Positions 4,809 to 39,900 of a DNA stretch of 64,000 nt are shown here, piece after piece. The DNA comes from Octopus sinensis (taxonomy: Eukaryota): positions 206,398,001 through 206,462,000 of the forward strand of contig NC_042997.1 in assembly GCF_006345805.1 (NCBI RefSeq), in the 5' to 3' direction. A model generated the notes under the pieces. That model was not told the origin of the DNA. It searched no databases and worked only from the letters and a program-made list of their open reading frames with translations. Positions within the stretch are counted from its first letter, which is position 1. Each line of letters begins with the position of its first letter. The translations under genes were made by a program, and so were the position numbers.

Positions 4809-4824
4809 TATATATATATATATA

Positions 4825-8774: not shown

Positions 8775-9440
8775 CCCAGGGTCTCAAGGGTCCATACCTC
8801 CCAAACCCTCAGAGTTGGCACTTTCAATGTCAGCACACTGAAAGGTAGGTCTAGTGAGATTGTTGAGCTGCTTGATCGGAGATGTGTCGATATGTACTGC
8901 ATCCAAGATGTTAGGTGGAGAGGAGGTTCTGCTAGGTTCCTCACAGGCAAAGAACATAGGTACAAGATTTTCTGGGCAGGGAGCACTGATGGGGTTGGGG
9001 GTGTGGGTATATTTCTTGCAGAGAAATGGGTTGATAAGGTAATCGAGGTAGTCGGAGTATGCGACAGAATGCTTAAGATTAGATTAGTGCTTCATCATGG
9101 GTTAGCAACCATTATCTCAGCCTATGCCCCTCATCCAGGGCTACCGATGGACAGAAAGACCGATTCTATGACACCCTCTTGCAAACTACCTCATTGACGA
9201 ACGACAGGGACCTTCTCTTCATGGCTGGTGACTTCAATGGACATGTTGGACAATATGCCGTGGGCTTCCATGGCATACATGGAGGCTACGGTTTTGGCTC
9301 CTGCAATGATGAGGGAACCAGGCTGCTGGAGTTCTGTGATGAAAGTTGCTGAATAAAGAAAATGAAAGGGAGAAAGAGAGTCTGTCGTATGTCAACCCAT
9401 CAGAGGGACCAGCTATCCGAGTTGACAGTACCTTGGTAGA
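8775..9440 (+). mobile_element. RTE LINE fragment (AP endonuclease)
   Basis: TLRVGTFNVSTLKGRSSEIVELLDRRCVDMYCIQDVRWRG; AGDFNGHVG. Confidence 0.9.
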
Positions 9441-9444
9441 TAAA

Positions 9445-10575: not shown

Positions 10576-10640
10576 AACTAATGTGTTTCTCCATTTTCTT
10601 ATTTGCAATATATATATATGTGTGTGTATGTGTGTGTGTG

Positions 10641-10997
10641 CAGGCATGGCTGTGTGGTAAGTTGCTTCCTTACCAATCACATGGTTCCAGGTTCAGTCCC
10701 ACTATGTGGCACATTGGGCAAGTGTCTTCTACTATAGCCCTGGGCAGAACAAAGCCTTGTAAGTTGATTCAATAGATGGAAACTGAAAGAAGCCTGTCAT
10801 ATATATATATATGTATATATTTATGTGTCTCTGTGTTTGTTGCCCCACTTGACATCCGATGCTGGTGTGTTTACAGCAAAAGAGACTGATAGAAAAAGCA
10901 CCAGGCTTACAAAGAATGAGTCTTGGGGTCAATTTCGTCGACTAAAGGCAGTGCTCCAGCATGGTCACAATCAAATGACCGAAACAAGAAAAGAGTA
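10641..10997 (+). mobile_element. tRNA-derived SINE, second copy
   Basis: Homologous to 4412-4808. Confidence 0.8.
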
Positions 10998-11009
10998 ATA
11001 TATACACAC

Positions 11010-12530: not shown

Positions 12531-12856
12531 CTTATTATTACTACTACTACTGCTGCTGCTGCTGTTGTTGTGAGGTGGTGAGCTGGTACAATCATCAGCA
12601 AATTGGGTGAAATGTTTAGCTGCATTTCATCAGTCTGAGTTGCACCTTTTCAGGGTCTACAAAATGAGAACCAGTTGAAAACTGGAGTCAATAAAATCAA
12701 CTTTTGGTGCCTCTTGAAATTGATGGCCCTGTGCCAAAATTTCCAACCGATATTACTGTCTATATGGAATAAAGTGGTTCTTTAAATACAGAGAAGAACG
12801 TTTGATTAAAAATTAGAAATAAAACAAAGCGCATAAAGAATTTTGTTTATTTTCAG

Positions 12857-12993
12857 ACACTGCATCGTCAAACGTATCCCTTCCTGGCTCACAACAGGAA
12901 CCATCCTCTATGACACCCAGAACTAATGAGACATCCAGAGAATATGATGACATTGAAATAAACCTAACAATTGGTTCAATTTCTAATGTATCT
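12857..12993 (+). CDS. PARP14: Exon A (module 1): Ser/Thr-rich linker plus first macrodomain strand, (D)[45 protein letters not shown]
   Basis: ttttcag|AC acceptor, TCT|gtgagt donor, 137 nt, phase 1 to 0. Confidence 0.85.
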
Positions 12994-15900
12994 GTGAGTA
13001 AAAAGATTCATGTAACTTATTTATATTTAATTGTTATTTCATTTCCAAATGAGAAATCATTACAGTTAATTAAAACATTTTCTCAATCTAACTCAAACAT
13101 TTTATTTCCTTCACATCTGATATCTTGAGTATATCTTTTGCTAACTTTGACAACCTCAAACTTACTACAGCCATTCTGTAGAGCCTTTCTTAACAACAAT
13201 ATCAACTGCAACATTGTATCTCTTTTCTCTCCATGGACTGTTCCTTAGTTGTTTACCATTAATTACTTTTGTAGGTTGATGTCATCGTTAACAGCACCAA
13301 TGAAGAACTCCAGCTTGACAGTGGTGCTATCTCCAAATATATTCTCTTTGCTGCTGGTCCACAGATACAAGATGAATGTAGCCAGAAATATCCTCAAGGT
13401 ATTTCTACATCTAAAATATCCATCACTAAAGGATATAACCTCAAATGTAAGAATGTATTTCATCTGGCATTACCTCCCTGGGATGAAAATTCCTCTGATT
13501 CAGTAAGTATCAATCATATGATATTGATTTATTGAAACAGTTAATGTTTGAAGAGAACCTTATGCATGTTGTGTGAGAATCATAAAGCAAATGTCAGCAT
13601 CCTGTTTAATATTTGTTCTTCCAAGTTACCATTGGAAGGAAGCAGAAGATATCGATGAACAGGACACTTTTATATATAAATAGAAGGAAAAAAGCCTCAT
13701 GGCCTAACAACAGTTATTTGACTGATAAATAAGACTATATTAAAACATATTTCTCTGTTTTACTGTCTGTATTGGTGAGTTTTTCTCTGTCATGGCACGA
13801 GCACTAGAGAGGTTGTCATGTCCTCGACAACACTAAAGACTCCTCTTGGGTCTGCATTGTCTCTCTTCATTCACCAACCATTTTACATGGTGGATTGGGT
13901 CTGTTTTATTGTAGCAGCATCATGAGTGAGGTTGCCTTGTCCCTTGCAGGACTAAAGAGTGATAGGAATGACAGTTGTGTTTAGAAGTGGTAGGAGTGAG
14001 AGGAGTTGTGAGAGGAGGATATATTTATTACAACTTAATGGTTTCTTCCTGTAATAAGAAAATAATTTAATAAAATGTTCATTATCAATTACTAAACAAT
14101 TAATTTTTTTAGATTCTGGCAAACTTGACTCAAATAATAACCATTTGTCTGGAAGAAGCTGAGAGAATGGGTGCAAAAAGCCTGGCATTTCCTATATTAG
14201 GGGCTGAAATGAAATACCCCATTGAAAAATTACCTGGAATTATGTATGAAGCAGTGAAAAACTATGCAGATCTAAATTCAAGCCAGATCAAAGATCTTTA
14301 CTTTGTGATTTGTCCTCAAGACACAGAAATAGCAAAGGTTGGTTGATGTTTTTGTTGTTTGTTGTTTGATGTTCATCATCATCATTTAACATCCACTTTC
14401 CATACTGGCATGGGTTGGACGGTTTGATTGAGGGCAGGCAAGCCAGAAGGCTGCACCAGGCTTCAATCCAATCTGGCAATGTTTCTACAGCTGGATGCCG
14501 TTCCTAATGCCAACCACTCCGACAATGTAGTGGGTGCTTTTCAAATGCCACCAGCACAAGGGCCAGTGAAGTGGTACTGGCTTTAACCATGCTCAAATGA
14601 TGCTTTTTACATGCCACTGGCACAGGAACCAGTCAGGTGGCACTGGCAACAATCACGCTTGAATGGTGCTTTTAATGTACCACAGGCATGGGTGCCAATC
14701 AGGAAGTACTGTTATTGGCCACGACAATGACTTCACTTGTCTCAACAGGTCTTTGCAAGTGCAGTTTATTGCCCAATGATTGAAGGGTACTCTTAAATGG
14801 GCTGGTTATGCTACACTGGCAGATGCCATGGGTTATGATCTCACTTGGCTTGCCGGGTCTTCTCAAGCACAGCATATCTCCAAAAGTCTCGGTCACTTAT
14901 CATTGCCTCAGTAAAACCCAATGTTCGAAGGTCGTGCTTCATCACCTCATCCCAGGTCTTCCCTCTACTGCCAGGTTCTCTCTGCTGCTAGGGTATGACA
15001 CTTTTTCACACAGCTGTACAGCAGCTGTCCTCATCCTTACTCACCACATAACCATACCAGTGCTGTCATCTCTCTTGCACATCACATCTGATGCTTCTTA
15101 AATCCAACTTTTCTTTCAGGGCGCTTACACTCTGTTGTGTATGCACACTGACATTACACATCCAGTGAATCATACTGGCTTCATTCCTTGCAAGCTTACG
15201 CATATCCTCAACAGCCATGGCCCATGTTTCGCTACCATGCAGCATGGCTGTTCGTACACATGCGTCATGCAGTCTACCTTTACCTCCGAGCGAGAGGCCC
15301 TTTGCCACCAGCAGAGGTAAGAGCTCTCTGAACTTCGCCCAAGCTGTTCTTATTCTAGCCGCTACACTTTCAGCACACCCTCCCCCACTACTGACTTGGT
15401 CACCTAGGTAACAGAAGCTATCAACTACTTCTAGTTTTTCTGCCTGGAATGTGACAGAAGCTATTTTCTGCACATTTACTGTGTTTATTGCCACACACAA
15501 AATCTATCTTCCTAGTTTGCCTTCCTTTGATATTGCTGCACCTCTTATGCATCCATAGCTTACACTGGGTACATCTTACAGAGTTTCTACCTACACCTTT
15601 TCTACACATCAAGCAGGGCCATCTAGCTGAAGTAATTTGTGATTTGTCTGACTTCCTATTTACTAGGACTTTGGTTTTTGCTAGGTTGATTCAAATTCGA
15701 TGACTGGCGTCCGTGCTGGCAGGGTGCAAAGAGCACCATACGAGTATGATCATTGACAAAGCAGGTAACCGGCTTCCGTGCCAGTGGCACTTAAAGGGCA
15801 CCATTCGAGCGTGATCGTTACCAGCGTCGCCTTACTGGCACTGCCCGTGCTAGTAGGGTGCTAAGAGCACCATCCGAGTGTGGTCGTTGTCAGAGCAGCC

Positions 15901-16163
15901 AATTGTCACCTGTGCTGGTGGCATGTGTAAATGGATTCATGCGAGCTGAAGACAGCCTTTTAAAATTTGGAAATTTCACCACAGAGGGATAATTTCCTAT
16001 GAAAATATTCAGCAATCCTGAATGTGTAAGTTGTTAGACAACTTTTGCATAAAAAATATTTTACAATACAAACTTTTTAAAGCACTAAATAGCCAACTTA
16101 CGTGTAGCCAATTTCACTAATGTCTGTCCATCAGCTAGATAGATAGATTAGATAGATAGATAA

Positions 16164-16196
<33 letters not shown>

Positions 16197-19100
16197 TATC
16201 TTTTTATTATGGCCACACAGGGCTAAACACAGAATGTGGACAAAATACAATGTAGAGTTTTTCTTTTCAAGGTGGAGTGGGTGGGACACACAAAGTAAAA
16301 GTCAAATCAATAGGGATTGAAATCTTTGGTCTGTGTGGTGTACAAAAAAATATAAAGTTCCCCCAAAAAGGAGAATAGATATTGTTCACAGTTTAGGTGT
16401 ATCCTTGGAGAGAAAAACCTACAAAAATGACCGAGGTCACCTCAGGCAGCTTATAAAAAGTACAAGAAAGCAAGTACTTTTTCTCTCTTTTTGTGATACG
16501 TTTATGCTTAAAATGGTATTGTCTTTCGTACTTACTATTCTTGCCACATTTACCCATTTTTTATTGAAACATTCATTTGATAACACTTTCCTCTCTATTC
16601 TCATCCTCCTTTTCAAGTGGTACTTGAAAACGTTTATGAGAGACTGGCCAGAGAGGAAAGTGTTTGTTTGTAAACCTTTTAAACGCGCCCACCACCTGCA
16701 TTCTTTTGCCATAGCTACAGTGTTTCGAAAACTATTTTTCCTTCCTGTTTAAAGGAAGGTGGCAGGATAATATTCATGATTGATTCGGTTGATGGCCCAT
16801 CCCATACATGACAACAACCATTCAGTGAAGGTCCACAGCTCTGAAATAGCTGGACACTGTGCGAGTGAGTGCAGAACAGTTTCATCACTCTGACCGCATC
16901 TCGGGCAGGTCGGTCCTTGTGGTTTTCGAACCATGTTTGTAGATCTTCTCTCGAACTGGTAGTGCATCCTGATAGCATTGCCAAGTCAGGGATCTCTGGA
17001 AGTTATCCATAGGTCTCGGTCCAAATGTCGTCCTGAGAAGGCGGGTTAGGAATTTCTTGTCGACACCCAGGTTTGTACCAAGAGTAGTTCTCTATAGAAT
17101 GCATTGGTCGTTTCGAAGCTGCACAAGTTTGATCGCAGACGGTAGAGCTGCTGTAGAGCTTGGCACTACTCGCAGTGCCATTCACCTAATTTCAGTCTCT
17201 TTTTCATCCATGTTTGCAGTCCAGTGAGTGAGACGAGTTGCAAGAAGGCACGCCTCACAAATGGCACCCACACCTGTTCACTGTCATCAATGAAGTTCCA
17301 GAGATGCCGCAGTGTCAGCGCATGTCTGCGCATCATCATCTATGGCATCCCCAGTCCCCCATTTAACGGATGTTGACAGCAAATAGATCGCCTCACCATC
17401 GGAATGCTACCCTTCCACAGAAATCAAAAGAGTATGCGTTCTAGTTTCATGACGGTCAGGCGATAATCGATGACTGAGGCAATTTGCCACCTCCGCCCGA
17501 TCTTTTAGAGATAGCTTTCTCACAGCCCATGTTTGGCTGAGAGTGACCACTCTACTCGTGATCTCATCCCAGCAGTTCTTATCCATTTGGTGATCCGGAC
17601 CGAACCAGACCCCAAGCAATTCAACTGGTCCGTTCATCCAGCATCCCCCTACAGAGTCACTCTTGGACAGTATGGGCTTCCTTCTCCAGTTGCCGAGTAG
17701 CAAGCCCACTGACTTTTCCGGGTTATTTTTTGCTCCCATCACCGTTTCGCCTAGCAGCTCGATGCGCTTTTGGCTCAACACTATGACAATGGCATCAACT
17801 GCATATGCCGACATGCTCATCCTGCAACACAACTCTCGTGGAATACCCCTCAGTGTCGCTAGCTTCCACAATAGTGGCTCGAGAACCAATACATAGAGAA
17901 GTGCCAATAGGGGACATCCCTGACGGGCAAAATGCATGATGTCAAAAGGTTTTGAAAGGTGACCGTTTACCTGAATTATCAATTGGATGCTGCTATACAA
18001 GGCAGTGATCCAACTGCAGAAGACGGGACCAAAGCCAGCTGCTCTGAGAACAGCTTCTAGGTATTGGTGGTCGACCCTATCGAAAGCTTTAGATTGATCC
18101 AAATTGATCAGCGCCCCACCCATACCAGGATCCTTAATTACCCTGTCCATGATGTAGTGCATGAGGTGGAGGTTGTCATGGATGGTTCTGCCCAGCACGG
18201 TGCATGTTTGTGCCCTGTTGACCAGTTTATCGATGACAAGCAACAACCTCTCGGCTATTACTTTGGCCAAAATTTTCAATGCGTTGAGCAGACTGATGGG
18301 CCTGAAATTATCTATAAAATTCCCCTTGTTTATGTCTTTCTTCAGTAATGTCACTGCACCTCGGCTCACGAAACTGGGGATTCTTCCGTTTTGTTGCCAG
18401 TTGCAGAAGACTGATGCCATGAGGTCACCAAATAAGTCTGGCATTTGACAATACAGCTTGTAGGGTAGACTGTCCAATCCAGGCAACTTATCTCTTGCAC
18501 AACCCACCATCGCATCAGTAGCTGTGATGAGACCCTCACAACACTCAGCTTCTCTTGCCGAGAGCCGCCGCAGGCTGGTCAGGTAGGCACTGAATTCCAT
18601 CCTGCATTCCGACCCACCACTCACCAAATAGTCGAGCAAGGTGATGTTGAAAGGCCTCACACATCCTTTCAGGTTCAAGTAAATTGCATCCCCATTGATC
18701 TATTAGAGACCAAATGGTGGCTTTGTTGCCACGTTGCACCTCTGCTACACGGGCTTCTTCAACAGCTTCAATCCCTTCATTTTTTAAGGCACACATTTTA
18801 GATCTGATGACCCAACCTTCGTGTTTGGTGTTGAGCTGTTGGTCGAGGGCCAACTTTGCAGCCAATATGTTGGTTGTGTTGCGAGTTGAAAGTGCCTCTT
18901 CTAGTTTCTTAACTAAGTCTCCCTCTACTCTATTTCGATCTATGGCTAATTCTTTGCTAAACCTGATTTAATTGCCGTTTTTAGGGCAAACCACCAGAGG
19001 TTGTTAATAATGGCTCCTGTTAATGCCCTCTTAATTAACTTGCTAATCCAGTTCCTGTAAATCTGCAGCACTTAGAGTGACGCGTTCAGTTTCCAGTAAC

Positions 19101-21139
19101 CAGGACCCTGCCTATGAGTCTTATCTAAGTTGTGCGTACACATCACAAATTTGTGATCTTTGTAGCTGACTATTTTAAATTGTGGACATCCTACGCTCTC
19201 TCTATCTGCTGTTCTACATAGAACTCTATCTAAGTACGATCTCGACAATCCGATGCGGTTTGTCCAAGTCCACATTGGCATATTCGGATGGTCAAGTCGG
19301 AACCTGTCAGACAGATGAAAATGTCTGAGCAGGTCTTTGAGGCACTTACATCCCCTTCTATTCCTATCCATTCCTACAAAGTCTAGATGCATGTCCAAGG
19401 TAGCGTTCCAGTCCCCTACTAACAGTAAAGGTTGAGACATTCCCAGGAAAACCTCTAGACGTCTGAAGAAATCCGCCCGACCCGTTAAGGACAGTGCATA
19501 CACTGCCATCAGATGGAAAGCACACTCATTTCTGCCATCGACGTCCAAGACAACCAGCCTACCCTCCGGGTCTAGGAATATTGACCTTACTTTTATGCTT
19601 AGACTCTTCTGAAAAAGCACTGTGGTACAACCACCACCCATGTTTGGCCGAGAGGGAGAAAAATAAATGTTGAATTGTCCATCAAACATGGACGAGAGGG
19701 CCCTCAGGTTACTGAGTCTGGTTTCACTGATAGCTACTATATCAATGTTCAGTGACTTGATGTTATTTAGAAGATAACCTTGTTTCCAAGCTGATGCAAA
19801 GCCATATACATTTACACAACCTAATTTAAGCATAATTTAGTCAAAAGTTGTGTTTTATACACAATAGTAAAGAGATGAGAGAGAAGGTTACATACTCATT
19901 TTGAAAGTTTTACATTCCTCCTCCTTTGAAGTGTCTTGGAGGAGGTTTTTTAAATAATTTTTTGGATAAAAAGTTTTGGAATCCTCAATAATGTTAGTTA
20001 ATGGTGTAGTGGCATTGCTTGGAGTATTTGGCTTAGCAACCATGGTGCTCTTTTTGTTGTTGGTGGTGGTGGTAATGTTTGTAGTGGTGATAGTAGAAAC
20101 AGTGGATGGTATATTTTTATTAATAGTATTAATATCTTCACCAGTAATAGGTGAGATAATCAGTTTATGGGAATCAATAGGCACAATTGTAGTGATAGTA
20201 TTGTTGTTGTTGTTGTTGCTGTAACAGTGCTTACTTTAGCGTGTGTGTGTGAAAGATTCGTTCTTTTTTTCTTTCATCATTCCCAGGCTAGGAAAATGTT
20301 CATTCATGAAGGATACCAACCAGCGCTCCACAATCAAATTTCTCAACATTTTCAAAATCAAGAAAGAAGATCGGATATTAAAGTAGTGCTGAAACTGCCC
20401 CTAGGGGCCAATTCTACCCTTAAAAATACCCAAATAAAAGCTGGGTGCTTCACACACCTCCAATGCAATAATGTAAACAAAGCTTGTTCAATGAAAAATG
20501 CAGACGACACAAAAATGTCAGATGACAGATAGATTTCTCGACATTTATAAAACTTGAGAAAGCAAATTAGATATTAAAATAGGGCTGAAATTGCCCCTAG
20601 GGGAAAATTTCCCCTTGGAAACACACCCAGATGAAAGCTGGGTGCCTTGCACATCTCATGTACGGAAATGTAAACAAAACTTATTCAATAAACGGTAGAA
20701 AAAAGCGATAACCTTGTAGCATAGCTCTGTGATATCCTCACTGTTTGAGAGAAATCATAGAAATGGTGTCGTGTTAGATAGCAGCCAGCCAATGGCTGCT
20801 TGGGACTGTTTGTGTCCGCTGCTCTAATTGGTTGACTTACACACTGGCGCGAAATCAAACTTCACCAAAACCAACCAATCAGGGAAGCGGACACAACTGG
20901 TCCAAGCAGCCGTAGGATGGCTGCTATCTAACACAACATCATTTCTATGATTTCTCTCAAACAGTGAGGATATCACAGAGCTACACTACAACCTTAAAAG
21001 CTGATACAACAACACATAGATGGATGAATGGATGGATGGACAGACAGACGGAAAGACGGACAGACAGACAGACAGACAAATAGCTAGACTGATAGATAGA
21101 TAGATAGATAGATAGACAGACAGACAAATAGATAGACAA

Positions 21140-21177
<38 letters not shown>

Positions 21178-24100
21178 GGATTCAATTGGCCAAACAGGGC
21201 TCAACACAGAGGAAACAATACAATGTAGAATTTTTCTTTTGCGAAATTGATGAAAAGAGACTGAAAAAAGAACACATTTGGGGGTATGTGCACAAATAGA
21301 TAACAAGGTGGCATCTTTTCTTAACAATTTGAATTCCCAACAGGGGGACTACAGTTATCCATGGAAAGAAAATCCTATGAAAAATAACCATGGTAACCTC
21401 AGCAAAAGGAAAATTTCTATGAGAGCAAATTGCCCTCTCTCTCTCTTTGTTTTACAAGTTAAGGCTCAAACTGGTTGGTTCCGTCATTCATGCGTACCTT
21501 TTTGCTACATTCACCCACCTTTTATTAAATCTTTCATTAGACAAATTTCCCTCTCTACTCTTACTTTCCTTTTTTTTCAACTAATACCTGAAACAGTTGA
21601 TGAGAGATTGGCCAGAGAGGAAAGTGTTTGTTTCTAAACCTTTCAAACGAGTCCACCACACACATTCTTTCACCATAGCCACCAATACGATGAAAACTGC
21701 CTTGCCCACCCAGTTAAAGAAAGGTGGCAGAGCAATATTCAGGATAGACTCAGCTGACAAATATGTGGACACTGTATGAGTGTGTTCAGAACAGTTTCAT
21801 CATTCTGACCGCATCTCAGGCAGGTCAGTTCGGTGTTTCTTGAACCGTGTCTGTAGACCTTCTCTCAAACAAGCAATGCTTCCTGGTAGCACTGCCAGGC
21901 CAACAATCTCTGGAAATTGTCCATAGGTCCTGGCCTGAAAGTGGTCCTGAAGAAACAGGTCAGGTGTTCCCTGTCGATGTCCAGATTCTCCCCAAGCACA
22001 TCATAGTACCTCCCCTCCACTAGTCCTCTAAAGAACACCTGAGTGGATTTGAAGTTATTTATACCTGAACCTGGACAGCAAAGCTGTTCCGGAGCTAGGT
22101 GACACCCACGATGCCATTTGCCCAGTCTCAGTTTCTGCTTGATCAATGATGAAAGAGACGAGCTGCAGGAAGATATGTCTCACAAACGGTGACCACACCT
22201 GGTCACCATTGTCAATTAAACACTGGAAATGTTGCAGTTTCAGCACATGTCTGTACATTATTAACCATGGCATACCCAGCTCTCCATTTAGCAGGTGCTG
22301 ACAGTAAATGGATCACTTGACCATAGAAACATTTCCCTTCCGCAGAAAGTGGAAGAGTATACATTCCATTTTCATGCTGGTAGCATCAGGACAAGGTAAG
22401 ATGGTCAGACAGCAGTAGATGACTGATGTGATGTACACATTTTCCTCCTCAGCCCGACCTTTTAGAGATAGCTTCATCTCAGCCCATAGCTGGGTGAGAT
22501 CGACCACTCTTCTCATTATCTCATCCCAGTTCTCCATTTGAAGTTCAGGACCAAACCAAACACCAAGCAATTTAACTGGTTCATCAGTCAAGCGTCTCAT
22601 GGTGAAGACACTGCTGGATGGCAATGGTTTGCTTCTCCAGGTGCTGAGACCCAAACCCACTGACTTAACCTGGTTAATTGTATCTCCTATTACTGATTCG
22701 TACTCCCTTAGTGTCTCGCCAACCAAGTCAATAGGTCTAAGGCTTGACAGTATTGACAGTGACATCTACATATGCAAACATACTCATCCTGCATCCCAGT
22801 TCTCGTGGGATGCCCTTCAGTATCACCAGCTTCCACAGTAGTGGCTCAAGAGTCAATACATACAGAAGTGACAAGAGGGGACATCCCTGATAAACCGAAA
22901 ACATAATGTCAAAGGGTTTGGACAGATGGCCATTCACTTGAACTACTGAGTGGATGCTGCTGTATAAAGCAGCAATCTAACCACGGATGACAGAACTGAA
23001 ACCAGCTGCCTTGAGAACAGCCACCAAGTATCAATGGCTGAGCCTATTGAAAACTTTTGATTGATCCAAATTGATCAGTGCCCCACCCATGCCAGTTTCC
23101 ATAACTACCCTGTCTGTGATGTAGCGCACGAGTGGAGGTTATCATGGATGCTTTTGCCTGGCATGGTGCATGTTTGTGCCTTGTTGACCAGTTTCTCCAT
23201 GACAAATGCCAACCTCTTGGCTTGCACTTTGGCCAAAATTTTCAAATCTGCATTGAACAGAGTGATGGACCTGAAATTATGTATAACATCCCCCTTGTTT
23301 GGGTCTTTCTTTAGCAGTGTCACTGCTCCTCAGTTCACAAAACTCAGGGTACTCCCATTTTGCTGCCAATTGCAGTAGAGATCCCCAAACAAGTCTGGCA
23401 TATGACAATAAAGAATGTAGTGACAACCATACGTAAAGGAGATGGTGACAGAAATGTCTCTTTTTAAATGATGCACGGTCACCTTAAAGGCGACGGTGGT
23501 GGAAAACCTCCTGAGATACTGCATGTTGGTGTCATCACAAGAACGTGGCTGAAGTCGCTGGAACTGGTTGAGTCGTGGGAACTGGCTGGTCTGGTTGTAG
23601 TCAGTGGTTGAAGACCAAAGACGAGATATAGTGAATTGATGACGTCTTTTAAAGCAAGAGTGAAAACCCAAAAGACTGTGTCATGGGACCCTATCCAAAG
23701 GCCGTGATTGGTTGGTTTACACACTGGCACGAAATAAGACTGCATCAAAACCAACCAATCAGGGCAGTGGACACAACCAGTTCCATGTAGCCGTAGGCTG
23801 GCTGCTATCTAACACGACATCATTTCTATGATCTCTCTCAAACAGTGAGGATATCACCGAGCCATGCTACAAGCATGTAGGGCAGACCACCCAAGCCCAC
23901 CAACATGTCTCTCACGCAGCCTGCCATCAAATTCTGTACATCAGCAGCTGTGATGAAACCTTCACAACACTCTGCTTCTCTTTCCGAGAGTTGTGGCAGG
24001 ACATGCAGATAGGCACTAAAGTCTATACTGTGTTATGACTCACCACATATCCCAAACAGTCAGGTAAAGTACTGCTGAAAGGCATCACACATTTTACTGG

Positions 24101-27100: not shown

Positions 27101-30100
27101 GTCACAGTGGAAGGTTTTTCTGCCACATCCACTATAATACCATGTCTCCCAGTAGACTGGAAGGTCGTGGATGGAATATCTTTGATCCGAGTGACAAAGT
27201 AGTTTTCCTCATTTCCTTATTACTGATTAGAAAGAAATCATTAAATATTTCAAATATTTTGTTTGTCTTTTGTTAAATTAAATCTCTTCTCTTTAACCCT
27301 TTCGTTACCAAACCGCCCGAAAAAATTTTGGTTAATGTGACCAAACCGCCCAAACCCGCCCGTATTTACCTATTCATATTTAAATGAGAATATCAGAGCA
27401 AATCTCTTTAGTACATTCATGAAAACACGTATTATACTTCGTAAACAGTTCAACTACAGTTTTGTACAATAATCGAAGTGTAATTTTAATTCCGTGAATT
27501 TTGGGAGATTTTTTTCCAAAATTTGTTCCTATTGTGTTTTCAAAATTTGTAATTCTGACAAAAAATGGATACAAATTTCATTATATCAAGCAGCGAGTCA
27601 GAATTCGAAGGATTTTCTACTGAAGACCTTCATAAATCTAACTCTATGACTGAAAAAAAAAAAGCATGTGGTATTTGATAATGAATCTGATGTTTCATTT
27701 TCCGAAAGTGAAAACTGTGAATCTGAGATCTCCGACAGCAATAAAGAAAATGAATTGGCACCTGAATGGAGTGAAAATTTAAAAACTGTTTCTTTCGGTG
27801 ATTTTTCTGAAGAAACTGGACCAAGCCACAGACTTTCCCAGGAAAGTAAAGCCTTAGGCTATTTCTATTTACTTTTTCGATTGAGCCTATTTGAAATCAT
27901 TACGGCGGAAACGAACCATTACGCTAAACGTAAACAAAGCGAAAGAAACGATAGTTTGTTATTTCCCACAACCTTAAATGAAATTAAGACTATTTTGCCA
28001 TAAATATTATTATGGGTATCAGAAAGTTACCCAGAATAACAAATTCTATCGTAAAATTTTGTTGTATACCTAATTGAATATTAGCTAATAACCCATTTTC
28101 TATAGCGATGTTTGAACAAAATTTTAATAATTTTATATTTTGTTGAATTTACCTGTATCTACCTGCAATTAGAGTCACTTTGTGACAAAAATTATAGTAT
28201 AGAATTGGTTGAGAATATTTCATTAAATTATCTTCCAAAAATCAGATTAATATATCAATAAATAAAAAAGTTATAGTTGTTTAATGAAACCAGACTAAAT
28301 TTATGATTACGTTAGAAATTAATTGAAACACATAAGGGGTGTATTTTGGTCAGAAATATAGTAACGAAAGGGTTAAAAAAGCAAAAAATTAAACAAAAAT
28401 GATTCTCATGGTTTTGAATTTTGCAGGAATTTGAGGAATGTCTCCAAAATAAAGACGAAAATGAAGGAATGATGGATAAACAGGAAAATGAAGGATTTCA
28501 TTCAAAAGGTAAACAATTTGTTTGTTGATATTGAATATTATGGTGTCTTCTCTATTAAACATCACTGATTATTATTATTATTCTTTTTTCTTTCTTTTTT
28601 AAAATTTTCTTCCATTTTTCGCCGAGTGTTTTCCGTACACCTAGGGCAGAGAAGCTCATTGTATATATTCCTAGATTACACATGCAAATTCACAGGTAAA
28701 ATATGTATTTAAAAAATTAATAAATAAATAAATTCCTCAATGGATGTTGTTTTCACAGCGATAATGCTCTTCTTGGTATGGATAAGTCCCATAGAATTGA
28801 CACATTTTCTCCCTCAGTCACAGCTTCAGGATGGTGTTTATACCATTTGTCAGCAGTTTTGATTTTATAATGTCGACATATTGTCCAGTGTAAATATTGG
28901 CCAACTCTGTCATGTCTTGCTTTATATTCTACAGGTGCTAAGACTCTACACCCTGAGATTAAGTGGTCTATTGTTTCAATCTCATTGTTACAGCATCTGC
29001 ATTTTGGGTCAGCTCCATTTTTTATCACATTGGTAGTTGCGCGTTAATAAGCTTTGATCTTGAGCAGCTAATATGAAACCTTCACTCTCTGCTTTTAGCC
29101 CTGCGCTTCGTAACCATTGGTGCGAGTGTTTCTGGTCGACATCAGCTTGTTTGTTACGGGCCACATACTTGCCATGGAGAGGTTTCTGTTCCCATCTGCT
29201 AGCTAATTTTTCATGTGTTTTTGTCTTTGCAATTAATTCTATTTTCTTTGCAGCAGCAGTTGGCACATTTCCTTCAGCTTGATCAATCTGGTGTGTATCT
29301 AAGAGATCAGCAGCGAATTTTTAGCTCTCTTTGAGAATAGAGTGAAGTCTTTTCAGTCTTTCACATTGAAGTTTTTTTCGGTCTTTCATGTTTATTATTA
29401 TTATCATATGAAAACTCACAGCTTATTTTGCAGGGTATAATGGAAAGTGTCAGCTGTGCACACCCAGCAGACTAAGGCGACACTTGTTTACTGGTCATGC
29501 TTCAATAACCCTGCGAAGAATTCTTATAGTTCCAAGCAATGTTGATTTTTGTAGGTGTTGTACATTCACACTTGCACCAATCTTTTTCAGACATGTTGGT
29601 AGTTGAGTGCTGATACTTCAAAGGGCGCCAATTCCTATTGGTCTTACATCTACTCTCCTCACTAACCATAGCCTTTATATTCCTTTAAATCATCGTAGTT
29701 GTCTATCTTTTCTTCTTCCACATTGATCCTGTTATCACCGGGTCATGCTACATTGATTATTATGCATGTTCTTTCTTTTTTATTCACCACAACAATGTCT
29801 AGTTTCCTATGTCTGGTTAGGTGATTGCACTGGATCATTACATCCCACAGGATTTTGCAGTTTTCATTTTTGGTGACTTCTTCTGGGGTTTGCTCATATC
29901 ATGTCTCTGCTCTTTGTAGGCCATGATTTCCACAGAGCTCCCAATGGATCATTCCTTCTACATTATCATGATGCCATTTGTATTCGTGTTGTGCCAATTT
30001 TGGGCATTTACCAACGATGTGCCATACTGTTTCACCCCTTGCACCACACATTCTGCACTTGTCACTATTGGAAGTGTTGTCAATTCTGCACTTCATATAA

Positions 30101-30864
30101 TTGATCCTTAATGCTTGTTCTTGAGCTGCACAAATGAGTGCTTTTATCTCTATCTTCAGGTTATTCCACCTCATCCACAGACTCTGGTCTTTTGCATTTG
30201 TCCTGGCATTCACATCTCTTGCAAACTGACCATACATTTTATTTTCTTTCCATAATTTTTCTTTTTTTGTTCATTTCTTCTTTAAACTTTTCTTTACACA
30301 ATTTTCGGTTTTGATGATGTCAGCCTTCTTCGTTTGTTTCAACAGTGGCTCCACAGAATTTTTTATATACCACCCTAAGCTGTTTTCCTCACCATCGATA
30401 CCATCCAGGCAACTGATCAAACTTCTCCCACCCTTTCTTCTGGACAAGTACAGCTTATCGGTGTCACTCATAGGGTGGAAGGTTCCATCTACTGTCAACA
30501 TTTTTCTGGTCTTGGTATCCATTTTCTTCACTTCTCTCTTTTTTTTTTTTCCGCCATTTTATAATTCCCACTCCATACTGAAGTGATGCTATCACCCACA
30601 TATTAACTGCCTGGACTTTATTCCATCCAGTCAATTTTGAGTGCAGCACCAACCTCAGTCTTCAGAAATACTCCATCCTCAGTTGCTCTTTCATTTCCTT
30701 TTCCATTATCTCATTGAACTCTAGTACACAAAGGTATTTGTGTTCTTCCATTTCAATTTGCTTAAACGAGTCTAAATTCAGTAATTCTGTTTCTGTCAGG
30801 GACTGTGCCTTGCATCTTTTTAGGTAGATTACTTCATACTCTTGAATCCAAATTCCATTCTAAA

Positions 30865-30907
<43 letters not shown>

Positions 30908-33900
30908 CATTATTATTATTATTGTAAGGTACAATCATCAGCAAATTGGGTGAAATGTTTAGCTGCATTTCATCAGTCTGAGTTGCATCTTTTCAGGGTC
31001 TATAAAATGAGAACCAGTTGAAAACTGGAGTCAATAAAATCAACTTTTGGTGCCTCTTGAAATTGATGGCCCTGTGCCAAAATTTCCAACCGATATTACT
31101 GTCTATATGGAATAAAGTGGTTCTTTAAATACAGAGAAGAACGTTTGATTAAAAATTAGAAATAAAACAAAGCGCATAAAGAATTTTGTTTATTTTCAGA
31201 CACCGCATCGTCAAACGCATCCCTTCCTGGCTCACAACAGGAACCATCCTCTATGACACCCAGAACTAATGAGACATCCAGAGAATATGATGACATTGAA
31301 ATAAACCTAACAATTGGTTCAATTTCTAATGTATCTGTGAGTAAAAAGATTCATGTAACTTATTTATATTTAATTGTTATTTCATTTCCAAATAAGGAAT
31401 CATTACAGTTAATTAAAACATTTTCTCAATCTAACTCAAATATTTTATTTCCTTCACATCTGATATCTTGAGTATATCTTTTGCTAACTTTAACAACCTC
31501 AAACTTACTACAGCCATTCTGTAGAGCCTTTCTTAACAACAATATCAACTGCAACAATGTATCTCTTTTCTCTCCACGGAATATTCCTTAGCTGTTTACC
31601 ATTAATTACTTTTGTAGGTTGATGTCATCGTTAACAGCACCAATGAAGAACTCCAGCTTGACAGTGGTGCTATCTCCAAATATATTCTCTTTGCTGCTGG
31701 TCCACAGATACAAGATGAATGTAGCCAGAAATATCCTCAAGGTATTTCTACATCTAAAATAGCCATCACTAAAGGATATAACCTCAAATGTAAGAATGTA
31801 TTTCATCTGGCATTACCTCCCTGGGATGAAAATTCCCCCGATTCAGTAAGTATCAATCATATGATATTGATTTATTGAAACAGTTAATGTTTGAAGAGAA
31901 CCTTATGCATGTTGTGTGAGAATCATAAAGCAAATGTCAGCATCCTGTTTAATATTTGTTCTTCCAAGTTACCATTGGAAGGAAGCAGAAGATATCGATG
32001 AACAGGACACTTTTATATATAAATAGAAGGAAAAAAGCCTCATGGCCTAACAACAGTTATGTGACTGATAAATATGACTATATTAAAACATATTTCTCTG
32101 TTTTACTGTCTCTATTGGTGAGTTTTTCTCTGTCATGGCACGAGCACTAGAGAGGTTGTCATGTCTTCAACAACACTAAAGACTCCTCTTGGGTCTGCAT
32201 TCTCTCTCTTCATTCACCAACCATTTTACACGGTGGATTGGGTCTGTTTTATTGTAGCAGCATCATGAGTGAGGTTGCCTTGTCCCTTGCAGGACTAAAG
32301 AGTGATAGGAATGACAGTTGTGTTTAGAAGTGGTAGGAGTGAGAGGAGTTGTGAGAGGAGGATATATTTATTACAACTTAATGGTTTCTTCCTGTAATAA
32401 GAAAATAATTTAATAAAATGTTCATTATCAATTACTAAACAATTAATTTTTTTAGATTTTGGCAAACTTGACTCAAATAATAACCATTTGTCTGGAAGAA
32501 GCTGAGAGAATGGGTGCAAAAAGCCTGGCATTTCCTATATTAGGGGCTGAAATGAAATACCCCATTGAAAAATTACCTGGAATTATGTATGAAGCAGTGA
32601 AAAACTATGCAGATCTAAATTCAAGCCAGATCAAAGATGTTTACTTTGTGATTTGTCCTCAAGACACAGAAATAGCAAAGGTTGGTTGATGTTTTTGTTG
32701 TTTGTTGTTTGATGTTCATCATCATCATTTAACATCCGCTTTCCATACTGGCATGGGTTGGACGGTTTGATTGAGGGCAGGCAAGCCAGAAGGCTGCACC
32801 AGGCTTCAATCCAATCTGGCAATGTTTCTACAGCTGGATGCCGTTCCTAATGCCAACCACTCCGACAATGTAGTGGGTGCTTTTCAAATGCCACCAGCAC
32901 AAGGGCCAGTGAAGTGGTACTGGCATTGACCATGCTCAAATGATGCTTTTTACATGCCACTGGCACAGGAACCAGTCAGGTGGCACTGGCAACAGTCACG
33001 CTTGAATGGTGCTTTTAATGTACCACAGGCATGGGTGCCAATCTGGAAGTACTGTTATTGGCCACGACAATGACTTCACTTGTCTCAACAGGTCTTTGCA
33101 AGTGCAGTTTATTGCCCAATGATTGAAGGGTACTCTTAAATGGGCTGGTTATGCTACACTGGCAGATGCCATGGGTTATTATCTCACTTGGCTTGCCGGG
33201 TCTTCTCAAGCACAGCATATCTCCAAAAGTCTCGGTCACTTAACATTGTCTCAGTAAAACCCAATGTTCGAAGGTCATGCTTCATCATCTCATCCCAGGT
33301 CTTCCCTCTACTGCCAGGTTCCCTCAACTGCTAGGGTGTGACACTTTTTCACACAGCTGTACAGCAGCTGTCCTCATCCATTCGCAACTCATGACCATAC
33401 CAGTGCTGTCGTCTCTCTTGCACACCACATCTGATGCTTCTTATGTCCAACTTTTCTCTCAAGGTATTTATACTCTGTTGAGTATGCACACTGACATTAC
33501 ACATCCAGTGAATCATACTGGCTTCATCCCTTGCAAGCTTACGCATGTCCTCAACAGCCATGGCCCATGTTTCACTACCATGTAGCATGGCTGTTCGTAC
33601 ACATGCATCATACAGTCTGCCTTTACCTCTGAGCGAGAGGCCCTCTGTCACCAGCAGAGGTAAGAGCTCTCTCTACTTTGCCCATGCTATTCTTATTCTA
33701 GCAGCTACATTCTCAGAGCATCCACCCCTGCTGCTGACTTGGTCACCTAAGTAACGTAAGTTATCAACTACTTCTAGCTTTTCTCCCTGGGATGTGACGG
33801 AAGCTGTTTTCTGCCCATTTTTAGTGTTTATTGCTCCTGAGCATTTGCCACACACAAAATCTATCTTCCCAGTTAGCCTTCCTTTGATATTGCTGCACCT

Positions 33901-36900
33901 CTTACAGAGTTTCTACTTACACCTTTTCTACACATCAAGCAGTTCCATCTACCTGAATGGATTTGTGGTTTGTCTGACTTCCTATTTACTAGGACTTTGG
34001 TTTTTGCTAGGTTGACTCTAAGGCCCTCTGATTCTAGACCTTGCTTCCACACCTGAAATTTTACTCTAGTTCTGATAGTGACTCAGCAATTAGATCAAAG
34101 TCATCAACATAGAGGAGCTTTCAGGGGATATATGCTGTCCTGAATTCCTCTGTTATTGCCTGGGGACTATGAAGAATAAGAAGGGGCTGAGCACTGATTC
34201 TTGGTGGATCCCTACCCCTACCCAGAATTCTTCACTGTACTCATTGCCAACCCTCACCTTACTGACAGCATCCTTGTACATGGCTTGTACAGCTTTCACT
34301 AACCATTCATCTATCCCTTGTTTCTACAGTGTGTGAGAGAAAATTATGATGCTATAGGAGAGAAATATGTTAGCATGGAAGATGGTGCCCTTGTGTTTAA
34401 TGATTCTGCAAAAAAGAGGCTTCGAGATGGCATTATGAAAGACTGCTGAATGCGGAGAATGAATTGGGAGGAGGAGAATCTTCCAAAGATTGACCCAATT
34501 GAGGGACCCTGTAGATAAAGCAATTAAGGATATGAAGTCTGAGATAAAGCAATTAAGGATATGAAGACTGAGATAAAGCAATTAAGGATATGAAGACTGA
34601 GATAAAGCAATTAAGGATATGAAGACAGCCCATCAGCAATCACTGTAGAGATGCTTAAAATATCGGGTGGTGTTGGTTAGGGTCTTGTCACCCAATGACT
34701 GGTGTAGCGGCACCAGAGTCAAATGTTACAAGGGGGAAAGGTGATGCTTTATATAGAAATAACTACAGGGGTATCAAATCATTGGATCAGGTGATGAAAG
34801 TTACAGAGAGGGTCATAGCTCAACTAATTAGGGAGAGAGTTAGCCTAGATGAGATGCAGTTTGGTTTTGTGCCAGGCAGAAGCACCACTGATGCTATATT
34901 TCTGGTAAGACAGCTGCAGGAGAAATATCTTGCCAAAGATAAACTTCTATACTTGGCTTTCATTGACATGAAAAAAGCCTTTGACAGGGTCCCCTGGTCC
35001 CTTCTCTGGTGGTCAATGTGGAAACTGGGGATAGACAAGTGGTTGGTAAGAGCTGTACAAACCCTGCACAGGGATGCTGTTAGTAAGGCGGGGGTTGGCA
35101 ACGAGTATATTGAAGAATTCTGGTTAGAAGAAGGAGTTCACCAGGGATCAGTCATCAGCCCCTCTTGTTCATTATAGACCTCCAGCAATAACAGAGGGAT
35201 TCAAGACAGGCTGCCCTTGGGAGCTCCTCTATGCTGATGACCTTGCTCTCATAGCTGAGTCACTGCCAGTCGAAATTTAGGGTGTGAAAGCAAGGTCTAG
35301 AATCGAAGGGGCTTAGGGTTAACCTAGCAAAAACCAAAGTCTTAGTAAATAGGAAGGTTGACAAATCACAAACCCCTTCAGGTAGATGACCCTGCTCACT
35401 CTGTAGAAAAGGCATGGGTAGAAGCTCCTTACAATACACTCGGTGTAAGCTATTAAGCTATGAACACATAAAAGGTTTAGCAATATCAAAGGAAGGTTAA
35501 CTGGGAAGATACTTTTTGTGTATGGCTGATGCACAGGAGCAATAAACACTGAAGATGTACAGAAAACATACTCCATCACATGCCATGGGGAAAAACTAGT
35601 AGTAGTTGTTAGCTTCTGCTACCTAGGTGACCAAGTCTGTAGTGGGGCTGGTTACTCTGAGAATGTAGAGGCTAGAATAAGAATAGCTTGGGCAAAGTTC
35701 AGGGAGTTCCTACCTCTGCTGGCAACTAAAAGGTAGATTGTATGATGTATGTGTGCAAACTGCCATGACTGCTGAGGACATGCGTAGGCTTGAAAGAAAT
35801 GAAGCTAGTATGCTCCACTGGATGTGTAATGTCAGTGTGCATGCACAACAGAGTGTAGATGCCCTGAGAGAAAAGTTGTGCGAAAGAAGCATCAGATGTG
35901 GTGAGCAAGAGAGATGACTGTGCTGGTATGGTCATGTCTTACGTATGGATGAAGAGAGCTGTGTGAGGAAATGCCACTCCCTAATTGTAGACGGAAGCTA
36001 TGGAAGAGGTAGACTCGGGAAGATATGGGATGAGATAGTGAAGCATGAACTTTGAACATTGGGCCTCACTGAGGCAATGACAGGAGACTGAGACCTTTGG
36101 CAATATGCTGCAATTGAGAAGACCCGGCAACTATAGTGAAACCGCGGCCATGGCCGATGCCAGTGTTGCATGTCCGGCCCCGTTGAGAGTACACCTGATG
36201 CATCAGGCGATATGACATGCTTAAGAAGATCTATTGAGTCAAGTAAAATAAAAAATCACAGCTGTGGCCAGTGCCCCCTGACTGGCTTCCATTCCAGTGG
36301 CACATAAAATGCATCACCCCAATGTGGGTGATACCAGTACCCTCTGACTGGCTCCTGTGCCAGTAGCACATAAAAAGCACTATCTGAACGTGATGGATGC
36401 CAGGACCGCTCGACCAGCTTCTGTGCCTGTGGCACATAAAAAGCACCCACTACACTCTCGGAGTGGTTGGTGTTAAGAAGGGCATCAAGCTGTAGAAACA
36501 CTGCCAGATCAGACTGGAGCCTGGTGCAGCCTTCTGGCTCTCCAGCCCTCAGTCAAATCATCCAACCCATGCTAGCAGGGAAAGCAGATGTTTAAACGAT
36601 GATGATCATCATGATCATGATAATCATCATCATACATATACACAAGTGTGTGTGTGTCAGTCCCAGAATACACCACTCGAGAACACATGTTGGTTTGTTT
36701 AAGTCCCCATAACTTATCTGTCTGGTAAACGACATGATGAAACAAGCACCAGGCTTAAATGATCAATTAGTTCAAGTAAAAATTCTTCAAGGTATTGCTC
36801 CTGCAGGGCTGTAGTCTAATGACTGAAATATTCTCCCACCATTTTTTGAAAGTTTCCCGAGACAAAACCTGCCTCTCCATTCTCACCTTCCTTTTCAAGT

Positions 36901-39900
36901 GGTACTTGAAAAAGTTGATGAGCGATTGGCCAGAGAGGTAAGTGTTTGTCTCTAATCCTTTCGCTCAAGTCCACCACACACATTCTTTCACCATGGCCAC
37001 CAGTATGATGAAGACTGCCTTGCCTTCCCGGTTGGGGGAAGGTGGCAGAGCAAGTGTCAAGATAGACTTTGCCGACTGGTGGACTCATCCCACGAGTGAC
37101 AGCAGCCGTTCAGCCTAAGCCCACAGGTCTGAAATGGTTGGACACTGCACGAGTGCGTGCGGAACAGGTTTGTCAATTTGACCGCATCTCGGGGCAAGTC
37201 AGTCCGGTGTGTCTCGAACTGTGCCTGTAGAGCTTATCCCAAACAGGTAATGCTTCTCAATAGCACTGCCAGGACAGGGATCTTTGGTGATTGTCCCGGC
37301 CCGAAAGTTGTCCTGACCAGGCAGGTCAGGTGTTCCTCGATGTCATAGCAAATGGCAGATACGAGCCATTTTATTTCTATTTTAGGAGGCACATTCTTTA
37401 TTTTAATTTTTGTGACCCTACGGCCAAGGTATAGATAAATAAAGATAGATAGATAGACAGACAGACAGAAAGGTAGATAGATAGATAGATAGATACATAC
37501 ATACATACATACATACATACATACATACATACATACATACATAGAAAGACAGATATGTCGGTAGACAAACAGACAGACTGATAAATAGATAGATAGATAG
37601 ATACATACATACATACATACATACAAAGAAAGACATATATGAATAGACAGACAGACAGATAGATAGTTAAATAGATAGACTGATAGATAGATAGATAACT
37701 TTCTTTATTGGCCACACAGTGCTGGACATAGAGGGGACAATTACAAATGTAGAGCTTTTCTTTTCGGTGATGGAAAAGGAAAAAGAAGAAAAAAAGGAAA
37801 CAAATGTAAAATTTCGATCAAAAGGGATCGGAAGAAAAAAAAAGCAATCAAAAGGGATGGTGTATCACAGAAAGAAAAAGATTTTTTTTTCAAAGTAACA
37901 AACAAGATTAGGTTCGTCCGTGGAAAGAAAAGCCTACAGAAAAGACCACGGTAACCTCAGGCAAGGGGGAAATAAACACATGAGAGCAAAGTGCTCTCTC
38001 TCTTGCTCTCTTTTACGATTTACAGGATCATGCTCAAAGTGATTTCGTCACTCGAACGCACCATCTTTGCTACATTCACCCACCTTTTTTTTGAAACTAT
38101 CACAAGCAAAACCTGCCTTTCCATTCTTACCTTCATGAGCGATTGGCCAGAGAGGTAAGTGTTTGTCTCTAATCCTTTCGCTCGAGTCCACCACACACAT
38201 TCTTTCACCATAGCCACAGAAAGAGAGCGACAAAGACAGACGGAGTGAGAGAGAGAGAGAGAGAGAAGGAGTAGCTTATTACAACATTGGAAGAAAAACT
38301 GCAAATCGTCATTCTTTCTCTCTCTCCCCCCTCACTCTCTATATTTATGATGATGATAATGATGATGATATTTCGGTAACAGAATGCATCCCCTTCATCA
38401 CCACCACCACCCGTGTGCGATAGAATTTGTGGAGTTAGATATTCTATGGCTTGATGCCTTTCCTGTCACCAACCCTCACCTCGTTCCAAGGGAGGTAACT
38501 ATTTCCGCATTTTACAGAACATCACAAACTATTAGAAACAAAGGACACTGCTTGCATAACATGGACACTCGTTTACAGCTAACAAATAATGTAAAGGCAA
38601 GGAGACACACTCACATATGTATGAATGGCGCCTCTCATTTACTGCCTGTCAGACCCAATCACAGAGCTTTGATTGGCCTAAGGCTATAGTTAAAGACACT
38701 TGCTCAAGGTGCCATACAGTGAGACTGAACCTAAATCAAGATAATTAAAAGTAATAGCAACAGAAGCAGTATTAATACCAAAAGCAATCTTTATATCCAA
38801 CTAAATGTGGATGTTGTGTTAGAACATCAAGTACTACCTTAATTACCTTGAGAGGACCTCTCATATGGACGTACGGTCCATAAATGCATGCAAATTTATA
38901 TTGTTGGTAGACAACAATCATCTGCTACAGGCACCAGAACTGCCAGATCACGTATTTTCGCTCTGCTCAGGTTCATCAGTGATAGACGCCCTGTAGCAAC
39001 ACAACAGCCAAATCTCCCTGTCAACGATATATAGACAGTGATGTCACAAATAGCCTGAAGGCTTATTAAAGATAATTAATAGCAACAGAAGCAGTTTTAG
39101 TACCAAAAGGCATTCTTTATGTCCATATGCTGCAATGAAGAAATAGGGGAAATTCCTGTCCACTGTAGAACTGTTTGTGGAGTTCTTTCTTTTTGAATCT
39201 TTTCTCTTTTCCTTTGTCATCTCTCTTATGAATGACCATGATCCTAATTGTTGGACCTCCTCCACCTCCTCCTTCTTGCTTATAATATCAAAAAATAATT
39301 ACCTTGTACTCTGCTTTTGTTGCTCAAATATTCTTGGCTACACAAGATGCACCAAAGAACCTCAACTTCAACATTCTTGATAGACATTTCAACAGCAAAC
39401 ACAAGACTCAGCAGTTTTAATGAGAATGGTGAGTGGAGAGAAGAAACAATACAACTTCAGCTACATGAAGACACCATTGCCACATGTTTAACTTCACTAA
39501 CACCACATCAGTGGTCAGTATGGAAGGTTTTTCTGCTGCATCCACTGCAATACCATGTCTCCCAGTAGACTGGAAGGTCGTGGATGGAATATCTTTGATC
39601 TGAGTGACAAAGTAATTTTCCTCATTTCCTTATTACTGATTAGAAAGAAATCATTAAATATTTCAAATATTTTGTTTGTCTTTTGTTAAATTAAATCTCT
39701 TCTCTTTAAAAAAGCAAAAAATTAAACAAAAATGATTCTCATGGTTTTGAATTTTACAGAAATTTGAGGAATGTCTCCAAAATAAAGACGAAAATGAAGG
39801 AATGATGGATAAACAGGAAAAGGAAAGATTTCATTCAAAAGGTAAACAATTTGTTCCTTAATATTGAATATCATTGTGCTTTGTCATGTCTGTGTTAAAC

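Follow-up and report, generated by a model that had tools for sequence, protein, structure and literature searches.

Two near-identical four-exon macrodomain cassettes in a PARP14-like octopus gene and their probable concerted evolution

The cassettes and the gene that carries them

A stretch of 64,000 nucleotides (nt) of octopus DNA (contig NC_042997.1, positions 206,398,001 to 206,462,000; this whole stretch is referred to as the window) holds a part of a PARP14-like gene in which a module of four exons, A to D, encoding one macrodomain, is present twice in tandem. The two copies are nearly identical, which is probably due to the homogenisation of an older pair of cassettes. All numbers given for the module in the original prediction could be reproduced: each copy comprises 137 + 228 + 225 + 82 = 672 nt, or 224 codons (12857-28508 and 31200-39841), AG and GT are present at 16 of 16 splice sites of the eight exons, and the polypyrimidine tracts are good in both cassettes. 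The cassette is symmetric, as it is entered and left in phase 1 (1-1). The duplication is in frame as had been claimed, the leftover G of exon D and the first bases AC of the following exon A forming a codon for aspartate, so that the join between exon D and exon A′ reads FHSK/D and contains no stop.

A recount of the differences between the coding parts of both modules likewise gave the values of the original prediction, which are 10 nt and seven of 224 amino acids (96.9% amino acid identity). The amino acid changes from module 1 to module 2 are V7A, S95A, S120P, L184V, E198K, N218K and G220R. The differing sites (module 1/module 2) are 12861/31204, 12875/31218, 13419/31762, 13494/31837 and 13496/31839 in exons A and B and 14116/32459, 14296/32639, 28427/39760, 28489/39822 and 28493/39826 in exons C and D. 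With seven non-synonymous and three synonymous changes, the ratio of non-synonymous to synonymous substitution rates (dN/dS) between the cassettes of the window is 0.61. The match between the two modules is far above chance and reaches beyond the exons: a BLAST comparison of the window with itself yielded one block pairing 12585-15695 with 30928-34021 (95.2% identity, offset 18,343), a second one pairing 26309-27296 with 38723-39709 (96.1% identity, offset 12,414) and a weaker one pairing 28373-28669 with 39706-40027, which contains exon D. The coordinates of all exons and tracts are collected in Table 1.

Table 1. Exons of the PARP14-like gene and tracts shared or not shared by the two cassette copies (window coordinates; for tracts, the position in copy 1 is followed by that of its partner in copy 2)
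Feature	Position	Partner	Strand	Remarks
Module 1 exon A	12857-12993		+	137 nt; entered in phase 1; encodes a linker and the first strand of the macro fold; called from AG/GT flanks, translation and tblastn against octopus PARP14-like proteins
Module 1 exon B	13275-13502		+	228 nt; phase 0-0; loop-1 part of the macrodomain, VDVIVNSTN...G.IS
Module 1 exon C	14113-14337		+	225 nt; phase 0-0; loop-2 part; one codon short of most paralogs
Module 1 exon D	28427-28508		+	82 nt; exits in phase 1; acidic linker ending in FHSK
Module 2 exon A′	31200-31336		+	137 nt
Module 2 exon B′	31618-31845		+	228 nt
Module 2 exon C′	32456-32680		+	225 nt
Module 2 exon D′	39760-39841		+	82 nt
Probable exon E	47691-47792		+	102 nt; phase 1-1; 81% to residues 347-382 of Octopus vulgaris CAI9714770.1
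Exon F	48018-48199		+	182 nt; entered in phase 1; encodes an acidic linker and the start of a domain; identity to proteins of O. sinensis and O. vulgaris 90-97%
Exon G	52488-52853		+	366 nt; phase 0; the RefSeq models XP_029633941.1 and XP_036354925.1 begin with its 3′ part
Core tract, probably the most recently homogenised	12585-14900	30928-33243		31 mismatches in 2315 bp (1.34%)
Putative older layer	14900-15695	33243-34021		75 of 765 sites differ (9.8%); within transposon 14373-15695
Pre-D tract, probably homogenised	26309-27296	38723-39709		3.7% divergence over 26400-27296
Exon D and near flanks	28373-28545	39706-39878		9 mismatches in 173 bp (5.2%)
Two long interspersed nuclear elements (LINEs)	~16400-19983, 21356-24932		-	confined to the C-D intron of module 1; reverse transcriptase and AP-endonuclease open reading frames (ORFs)
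D-to-A′ intron	28546-31199		+	post-D flank, spacer, microsatellite; collinear at ~90% with VCDQ01000060.1

The cassette matches the Macro domain of Pfam (PF01661) with E = 1.5e-17 and 64.1 bits against a cut-off of 22 over residues 51-155, which bears out the earlier claim of a complete macrodomain, and the predicted partial protein contains two stretches matching this domain. The best solved relative is macrodomain 2 of human PARP14 (3q71/3vfq/5o2d; E = 2e-20 to 4e-32 over ~165 residues), followed by PARP9 and by macrodomains 3 and 1 of PARP14. The motifs IVNS...L.L..G..S and AFP..G are kept, and the glycine of loop 1 and the NS..N motif are invariant in the alignment. Loop 2 (14200-14225 and 32543-32568), however, is one codon shorter in both cassettes and reads GA-EMKYP, the second glycine being gone, as compared to GAGKLRYP in most paralogs and GTGNLGFP in macrodomain 2 of human PARP14. 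As the same deletion is found in two of the four cassettes of the Octopus sinensis protein XP_029633869.1 (GPEMKYP and GAEMKYP), it is a variant that has been maintained, not a recent lesion. An AlphaFold2 model of one cassette, built from an alignment of 12 sequences, reached a mean predicted local distance difference test (pLDDT) score of 40.8, which is too low to use, and the assignment to the macro fold is therefore based on the matches to solved macrodomains. By homology, the cassette would be an ADP-ribose-binding module of the macro2 type. In human PARP14, macrodomains 2 and 3 are readers and macrodomain 1 is a hydrolase (PMC13224862, PMC10221186); a reader and antiviral role of the octopus cassettes, as put forward in the original prediction, would be a transfer from mammals by analogy.

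Exons E, F and G follow module 2 in frame. Exon E is located between D′ and F, and the frame is kept whether it is included or skipped. The protein encoded by exon G is 100% identical to the N-termini of the O. sinensis RefSeq models XP_029633941.1 and XP_036354925.1, in which exon G is joined to catalytic exons located 13-19 kb further downstream, past the end of the window. At the DNA level, the identity of the window to O. sinensis chromosome CM016859.1 is 99.4% over 52648-54960, and its identity to the unplaced O. sinensis contig VCDQ01000060.1 is 99.2% over 49639-54960. The best PDB match of the catalytic domain of this O. sinensis counterpart is human PARP14 (E = 4e-43), followed by PARP15 and PARP10. 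Its catalytic histidine (LWHGT) and tyrosine (GVYFA) are visible in the alignment, and we read the third position of the triad as isoleucine, which would fit the mono-ADP-ribosyltransferase type. The earlier assignment of the gene as PARP14-like was thus corroborated by proxy, because exon G runs into a catalytic domain of the PARP14 type in nearly identical O. sinensis sequence. The window probably holds the middle part of an octopus macro-PARP gene.

A search of 1-12856 for macro1 or other N-terminal exons yielded nothing even at E = 5. No WWE domain was detected by Pfam or PDB sequence searches in exons F and G, in the predicted partial protein, in CAI9714770.1 or in one further relative, although a divergent fold may be present. 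An assignment of exon G as a WWE domain, suggested by its W-x-Y-F-D...LE.AY appearance, was dropped, as neither Pfam nor PDB sequence searches supported it. In CM016859.1 a gap of 100 N lies inside exon G (locus positions 9848-9947). As this gap cuts the exon, XP_029633941.1 is truncated and starts mid-exon, and the window provides what is missing upstream of it, namely two macro cassettes, exons E and F and the start of exon G. The window also flags the region as one in which cephalopod gene models and assemblies are unreliable. An in-frame ATG inside exon A of module 1 corresponds to the start codon that was chosen in RefSeq models of paralogs.

Mosaic identity of the two copies and its origin

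The identity between the two copies changes abruptly along their length. A change-point at ~14900 separates the core tract from a much more diverged segment (1.34% vs 9.8%; twice the log-likelihood difference 102.8). The break falls within a transposon (14373-15695) and neither at an exon edge nor at an edge of the transposon, which must be old, as paralogous loci carry it at the same position behind exon C. A decay of CpG sites in the transposon was considered as cause of the step and dropped, as only 10 of the 75 mismatches are CpG transitions. Further downstream, the tract preceding exon D and exon D with its near flanks form a layer of 3.7-5% divergence, while identity decreases to 73-81% (divergence >20%) in the flanks behind exon D. 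Within the core tract exons (1.19%) and non-exonic sequence (1.39%) have diverged to nearly the same extent and no signal of selection was found, which argues for similarity by copying and not by constraint.

The C-D introns of the two modules have a length of 14.1 kb (module 1) and 7.1 kb (module 2), a difference that is mainly explained by the two LINEs of module 1. These are 69-73% alike, and one of them contains a reverse-transcriptase ORF of 423 amino acids and an endonuclease ORF of 253 amino acids, so that the insertion may be fairly young. Module 1 alone also carries an insertion of ~1.1 kb (27297-28372) immediately 5′ of exon D. This insertion is probably another repeat element, as its end (28053-28377) matches 43138-42818 in reverse orientation with 82%. 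A common order of R-(GATA)n-R in both C-D introns was considered as old homology and discarded, as R is a LINE and the microsatellite probably its tail.

The sequences compared with the window include several further O. sinensis loci, most of them on CM016859.1 within ~5 Mb, and each of these loci contains one or two cassettes. Treating four of these loci (L001-L004) as orthologs, and their ~90% identity as species divergence, was abandoned; as the true counterparts of the window are 99.2-99.4% identical, these four are paralogs. Over exons B and C the window pair is 98.9% identical, the other O. sinensis tandem pairs 89.5% and 91.9%, and the identity of the window cassettes to all O. sinensis cassettes is 86-89%. 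The two copies are thus more similar to each other than to the cassettes of related loci, a relation expected from conversion within the locus. Adjacent segments moreover give discordant trees: intron B-C pairs copy 1 with copy 2 (98.9% as compared to ~91% to paralogs), whereas the 247 bp behind exon D pair copy 2 with the paralogous locus L002 (87.9%), copy 1 and copy 2 being only 78.5% identical there.

The layout of the window recurs in contig VCDQ01000060.1 (locus L008), although exons A-C of its upstream cassette are outside the DNA that was compared. At 84-96% identity, the contig is collinear with the pre-D tract of module 1, an intact exon D, a post-D flank of the module 1 type, the spacer and the microsatellite, and collinearity continues through exons A, B and C, an intron of the module 2 type, the pre-D tract, exon D and a post-D flank of the module 2 type up to exon F. 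The order of exon D, spacer and exon A is hence reproduced in one contiguous, independent contig. The flanks of the window cassettes are 86-91% identical to their counterparts there. As the contig shares this layout at ~10% divergence, compared to 1.3% between the window cassettes, the arrangement of two cassettes appears to be older than their near-identity. Within the contig, pre-D tracts are 97% and D exons 76% alike, which suggests that the converted tracts differ between the loci and adds a second discordance between adjacent segments. To the right of window position 49639 the identity to the contig is 99.2%, to its left it is 84-96% with the same layout (44669-54960 compared), and the contig contains ~13 kb extra between exon F and the block of 99% identity. 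The drop to the left of 49639 could reflect mosaic paralogy, or else the haplotypes of the cassette region may be very divergent.

Taken together, these data make it probable that an older pair of cassettes was homogenised by gene conversion or unequal exchange and that the pair does not stem from a new duplication. The tandem pair would have existed before the gene split from its closest paralog or haplotype, and non-allelic gene conversion or unequal exchange would then have overwritten one cassette by the other in patches. The latest of these patches would comprise exons A-C with their introns, and its result would be the two macrodomains that differ at seven of 224 residues. Should both cassettes be part of one mRNA, the gene would encode a protein with two macro2-like modules, an acidic linker, a further domain and a mono-ADP-ribosyltransferase domain. 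The original prediction had named lineage-specific expansion or homogenisation without a choice; mosaic identity and the layout of VCDQ01000060.1 favour the latter and disfavour a recent duplication.

Several observations weigh against homogenisation of an old pair as set out here. The transposon segment with 9.8% divergence is also ~2.2-fold more diverged than the core in comparisons with paralogs, so that a part of the identity step could be a difference in rate; scaled accordingly, this segment may fit the layer of 3.7-5% and would then not represent a separate older one. A homogenised region reaching from 272 bp before exon A to just past exon D would be exceptionally long for one conversion, so that several events or an unequal crossover would be needed. 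That VCDQ01000060.1 has a first cassette is deduced solely from a D exon with its flanking sequence. A post-D segment of 500 bp is present in this contig in extra inverted copies and, as it may be a repeat element, it is weaker as evidence for an ancient unit. Finally, that the cassettes are spliced together and physically stand in tandem in this individual is presumed from the assembled sequence.

A recent, lineage-specific tandem duplication of a single cassette, the C-D introns of which were altered later by insertions and deletions of transposons, is unlikely, but it accounts for some of the data. The two copies are mutual closest relatives in every coding exon, homology starts at the same trinucleotide microsatellite in both of them (30865-30927, which marks the left edge of homology), the young LINEs are found in copy 1 only, and the layer of 3.7-5% could date such a duplication if the A-C tract was converted afterwards. 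A recent duplication predicts, however, that the copies abut, while ~2.3 kb (28546-30860) lie between them, and this sequence is collinear at ~90% with the D-to-A spacer of VCDQ01000060.1, a contig in which a D exon already precedes a cassette. Moreover, the post-D flanks are too dissimilar (73-81%) and the identity step inside an old transposon would not be expected.

Both cassettes might also be real and yet not be used jointly, either because they are alternative or skippable, giving proteins with 0, 1 or 2 macrodomains, or because transcripts end after exon D. The symmetric phase permits in-frame joins of exon D to A′, E or F, an O. sinensis model joins D directly to F, module 2 of XP_029633869.1 is modelled without exon C, and an O. 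vulgaris model ends by readthrough of the D donor (HSKGKQFVC*), which the sequence of the window would permit as well. On the other hand, O. sinensis gene models and the UniParc entry P0013 (species unconfirmed, probably Octopus bimaculoides) connect exon D with the next exon A by the same HSK/D junction, and neither cassette has a damaged splice site or a poor polypyrimidine tract. Consistent separate use is rather improbable, but it is compatible with homogenisation of an older pair. As all joins between the units A-D, E and F are in phase 1, the number of cassettes may vary between isoforms.

That the assembly set two haplotypes of one cassette in tandem, or mis-joined a repeat, is very improbable: the core divergence of 1.3% is only about twice the 0.6-0.8% between the window and O. 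sinensis sequences, and the O. sinensis reference is gapped exactly here and contains haplotigs (the CM016859.1 locus and the contig being 99.66% identical), which marks the region as hard to assemble, but the sole run of N in the window (54961-55060) is more than 15 kb away from either copy, the segment of 9.8%, the flanks with >20% and the introns of different length and content look non-allelic, the junction of D, spacer and A′ recurs in one contiguous independent contig, and tandem pairs are known at three other loci and in Argonauta.

Cassettes in related octopod genes and known systems

Paralogous genes of O. sinensis contain one to four cassettes that are 71-92% alike, so that the predicted copy-number-variable modules exist between paralogous genes. 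Multi-cassette octopus proteins are already present in RefSeq, for example XP_029633869.1 ("PARP15 isoform X4"), which consists of a partial macro1, four cassettes that are mutually 71-86% identical (exon C is missing in the second) and a PARP domain. Full-length relatives from O. vulgaris and O. sinensis have a long N-terminal region, macro1 and one to four cassettes, and behind these either exons E-F-G or, joined directly, the PARP domain. The window pair (96.9% at the amino acid level) is the most similar Octopus pair found. Among paralogous cassettes dN/dS ranges from 0.35 to 0.9; these values are elevated, but they are not diagnostic. The identity of the window to an O. bimaculoides contig is 87%.

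In Argonauta hians, a distant octopod, the gene model GAB1599116.1 includes two cassettes, the A-C regions of which are 97.4-98.6% identical at the DNA level, while the D exons differ and the C-D introns cannot be aligned. This independent tandem pair is located at 5397-10396 and 18593-21471 of the A. hians locus L007, and 2 kb downstream a PARP domain is encoded by a gene model of its own. In both O. sinensis loci with two cassettes, exon C of the second cassette contains a frameshift (L001 34965-35192, L003 33948-34176), in L001 accompanied by stops, and the RefSeq models of both loci end out of frame at this exon. Either decay or indel errors of the assembly may be the cause.

Human PARP14 (ARTD8) is one of the closest known systems, its macrodomain 2 being closest to the octopus cassette and its ART domain to that of the O. 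sinensis counterpart, and homologs of PARP14 have been reported in molluscs (PMC10221186). In vertebrates, PARP14 has three ancient and mutually divergent macrodomains (MD1-MD3), which constitute the ancestral architecture (PMC10221186). The octopus genes are different in that the positions following macro1 are filled by one to four copies of one macro2-like cassette, and in the window MD1-MD3 were not found, but two near-identical MD2-like cassettes with no MD1 exon. Loop 2, which is one residue shorter, and the lack of a detectable WWE domain in exons F and G are further differences to human PARP14.

PARP9 and PARP15 were born by partial duplication of PARP14, clusters of PARP14 paralogs occur in lancelet and sponges, and turnover is fast (PMC4038475, PMC13224862). 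Like these, the octopus family duplicates macrodomain segments and has clustered paralogs. However, PARP9 and PARP15 are duplicates of whole genes or parts of genes that diverge, whereas the octopus unit is an intragenic cassette of exons, the copies of which are kept or made alike. XP_029633869.1 and GAB1599116.1 contain the same four-exon cassette with the same HSK/D junction as the window, and two cassettes of XP_029633869.1 also share its long D exon and its loop-2 deletion, although all four are only 71-86% alike.

A similar case outside this family is kringle IV-2 of human LPA, where a phase-symmetric domain unit of several exons is repeated head to tail and introns are homogenised together with exons. 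LPA, however, comprises tens of copies with proven variation in the population, while the octopus gene has two copies, known here from one assembly. The literature search yielded no paper on a PARP14 cassette array or its homogenisation in cephalopods.

In vertebrates, few antiviral genes evolve as fast as the macro-PARPs. Octopods appear to build the macro region of these genes from a repeatable exon cassette, the copies of which are kept alike, and this would be a clean case of concerted evolution within a gene of an immune-type family in an invertebrate. Genes with 1, 2 and 4 putative readers would form a natural series with which to ask whether the avidity for ADP-ribosylated targets is tuned by the number of macrodomains. 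A wider and clearly speculative idea is that octopods keep a quickly reconfigurable array of macro2-like cassettes (one to four per gene), with the fold-coding exons A-C homogenised repeatedly and the D linkers diverging. This array would have arisen or be maintained in parallel in Octopus and Argonauta, and it would be polymorphic between haplotypes in copy number or content and shaped by host-virus selection on ADP-ribose recognition. If this were true, the decrease in identity from 99.2% to 84-96% left of 49639 could stem from hyper-divergent haplotypes and not from paralogy.

Other repeats in the window

The sequence next to the assembly gap is repetitive on both sides. A purine-rich minisatellite with a 24-nt unit (AAGAGAGCTACAGAGAGAGGGAG) and ~58 copies adjoins it at 53566-54955, and O. 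sinensis sequence extends this minisatellite beyond the position of the gap. Right after the gap, 55061-60048 is a 5-kb block of 15-16% GC and (ATT)n-like sequence that consists of two 2.5-kb units (89.7% alike). A GC-rich satellite with a unit of 61/62 nt (122/124 nt as higher-order unit) is present in two inverted copies at 4996-5648 and 62309-63281, each of which adjoins a head resembling a short interspersed nuclear element (4824-5028 and 63254-63457).

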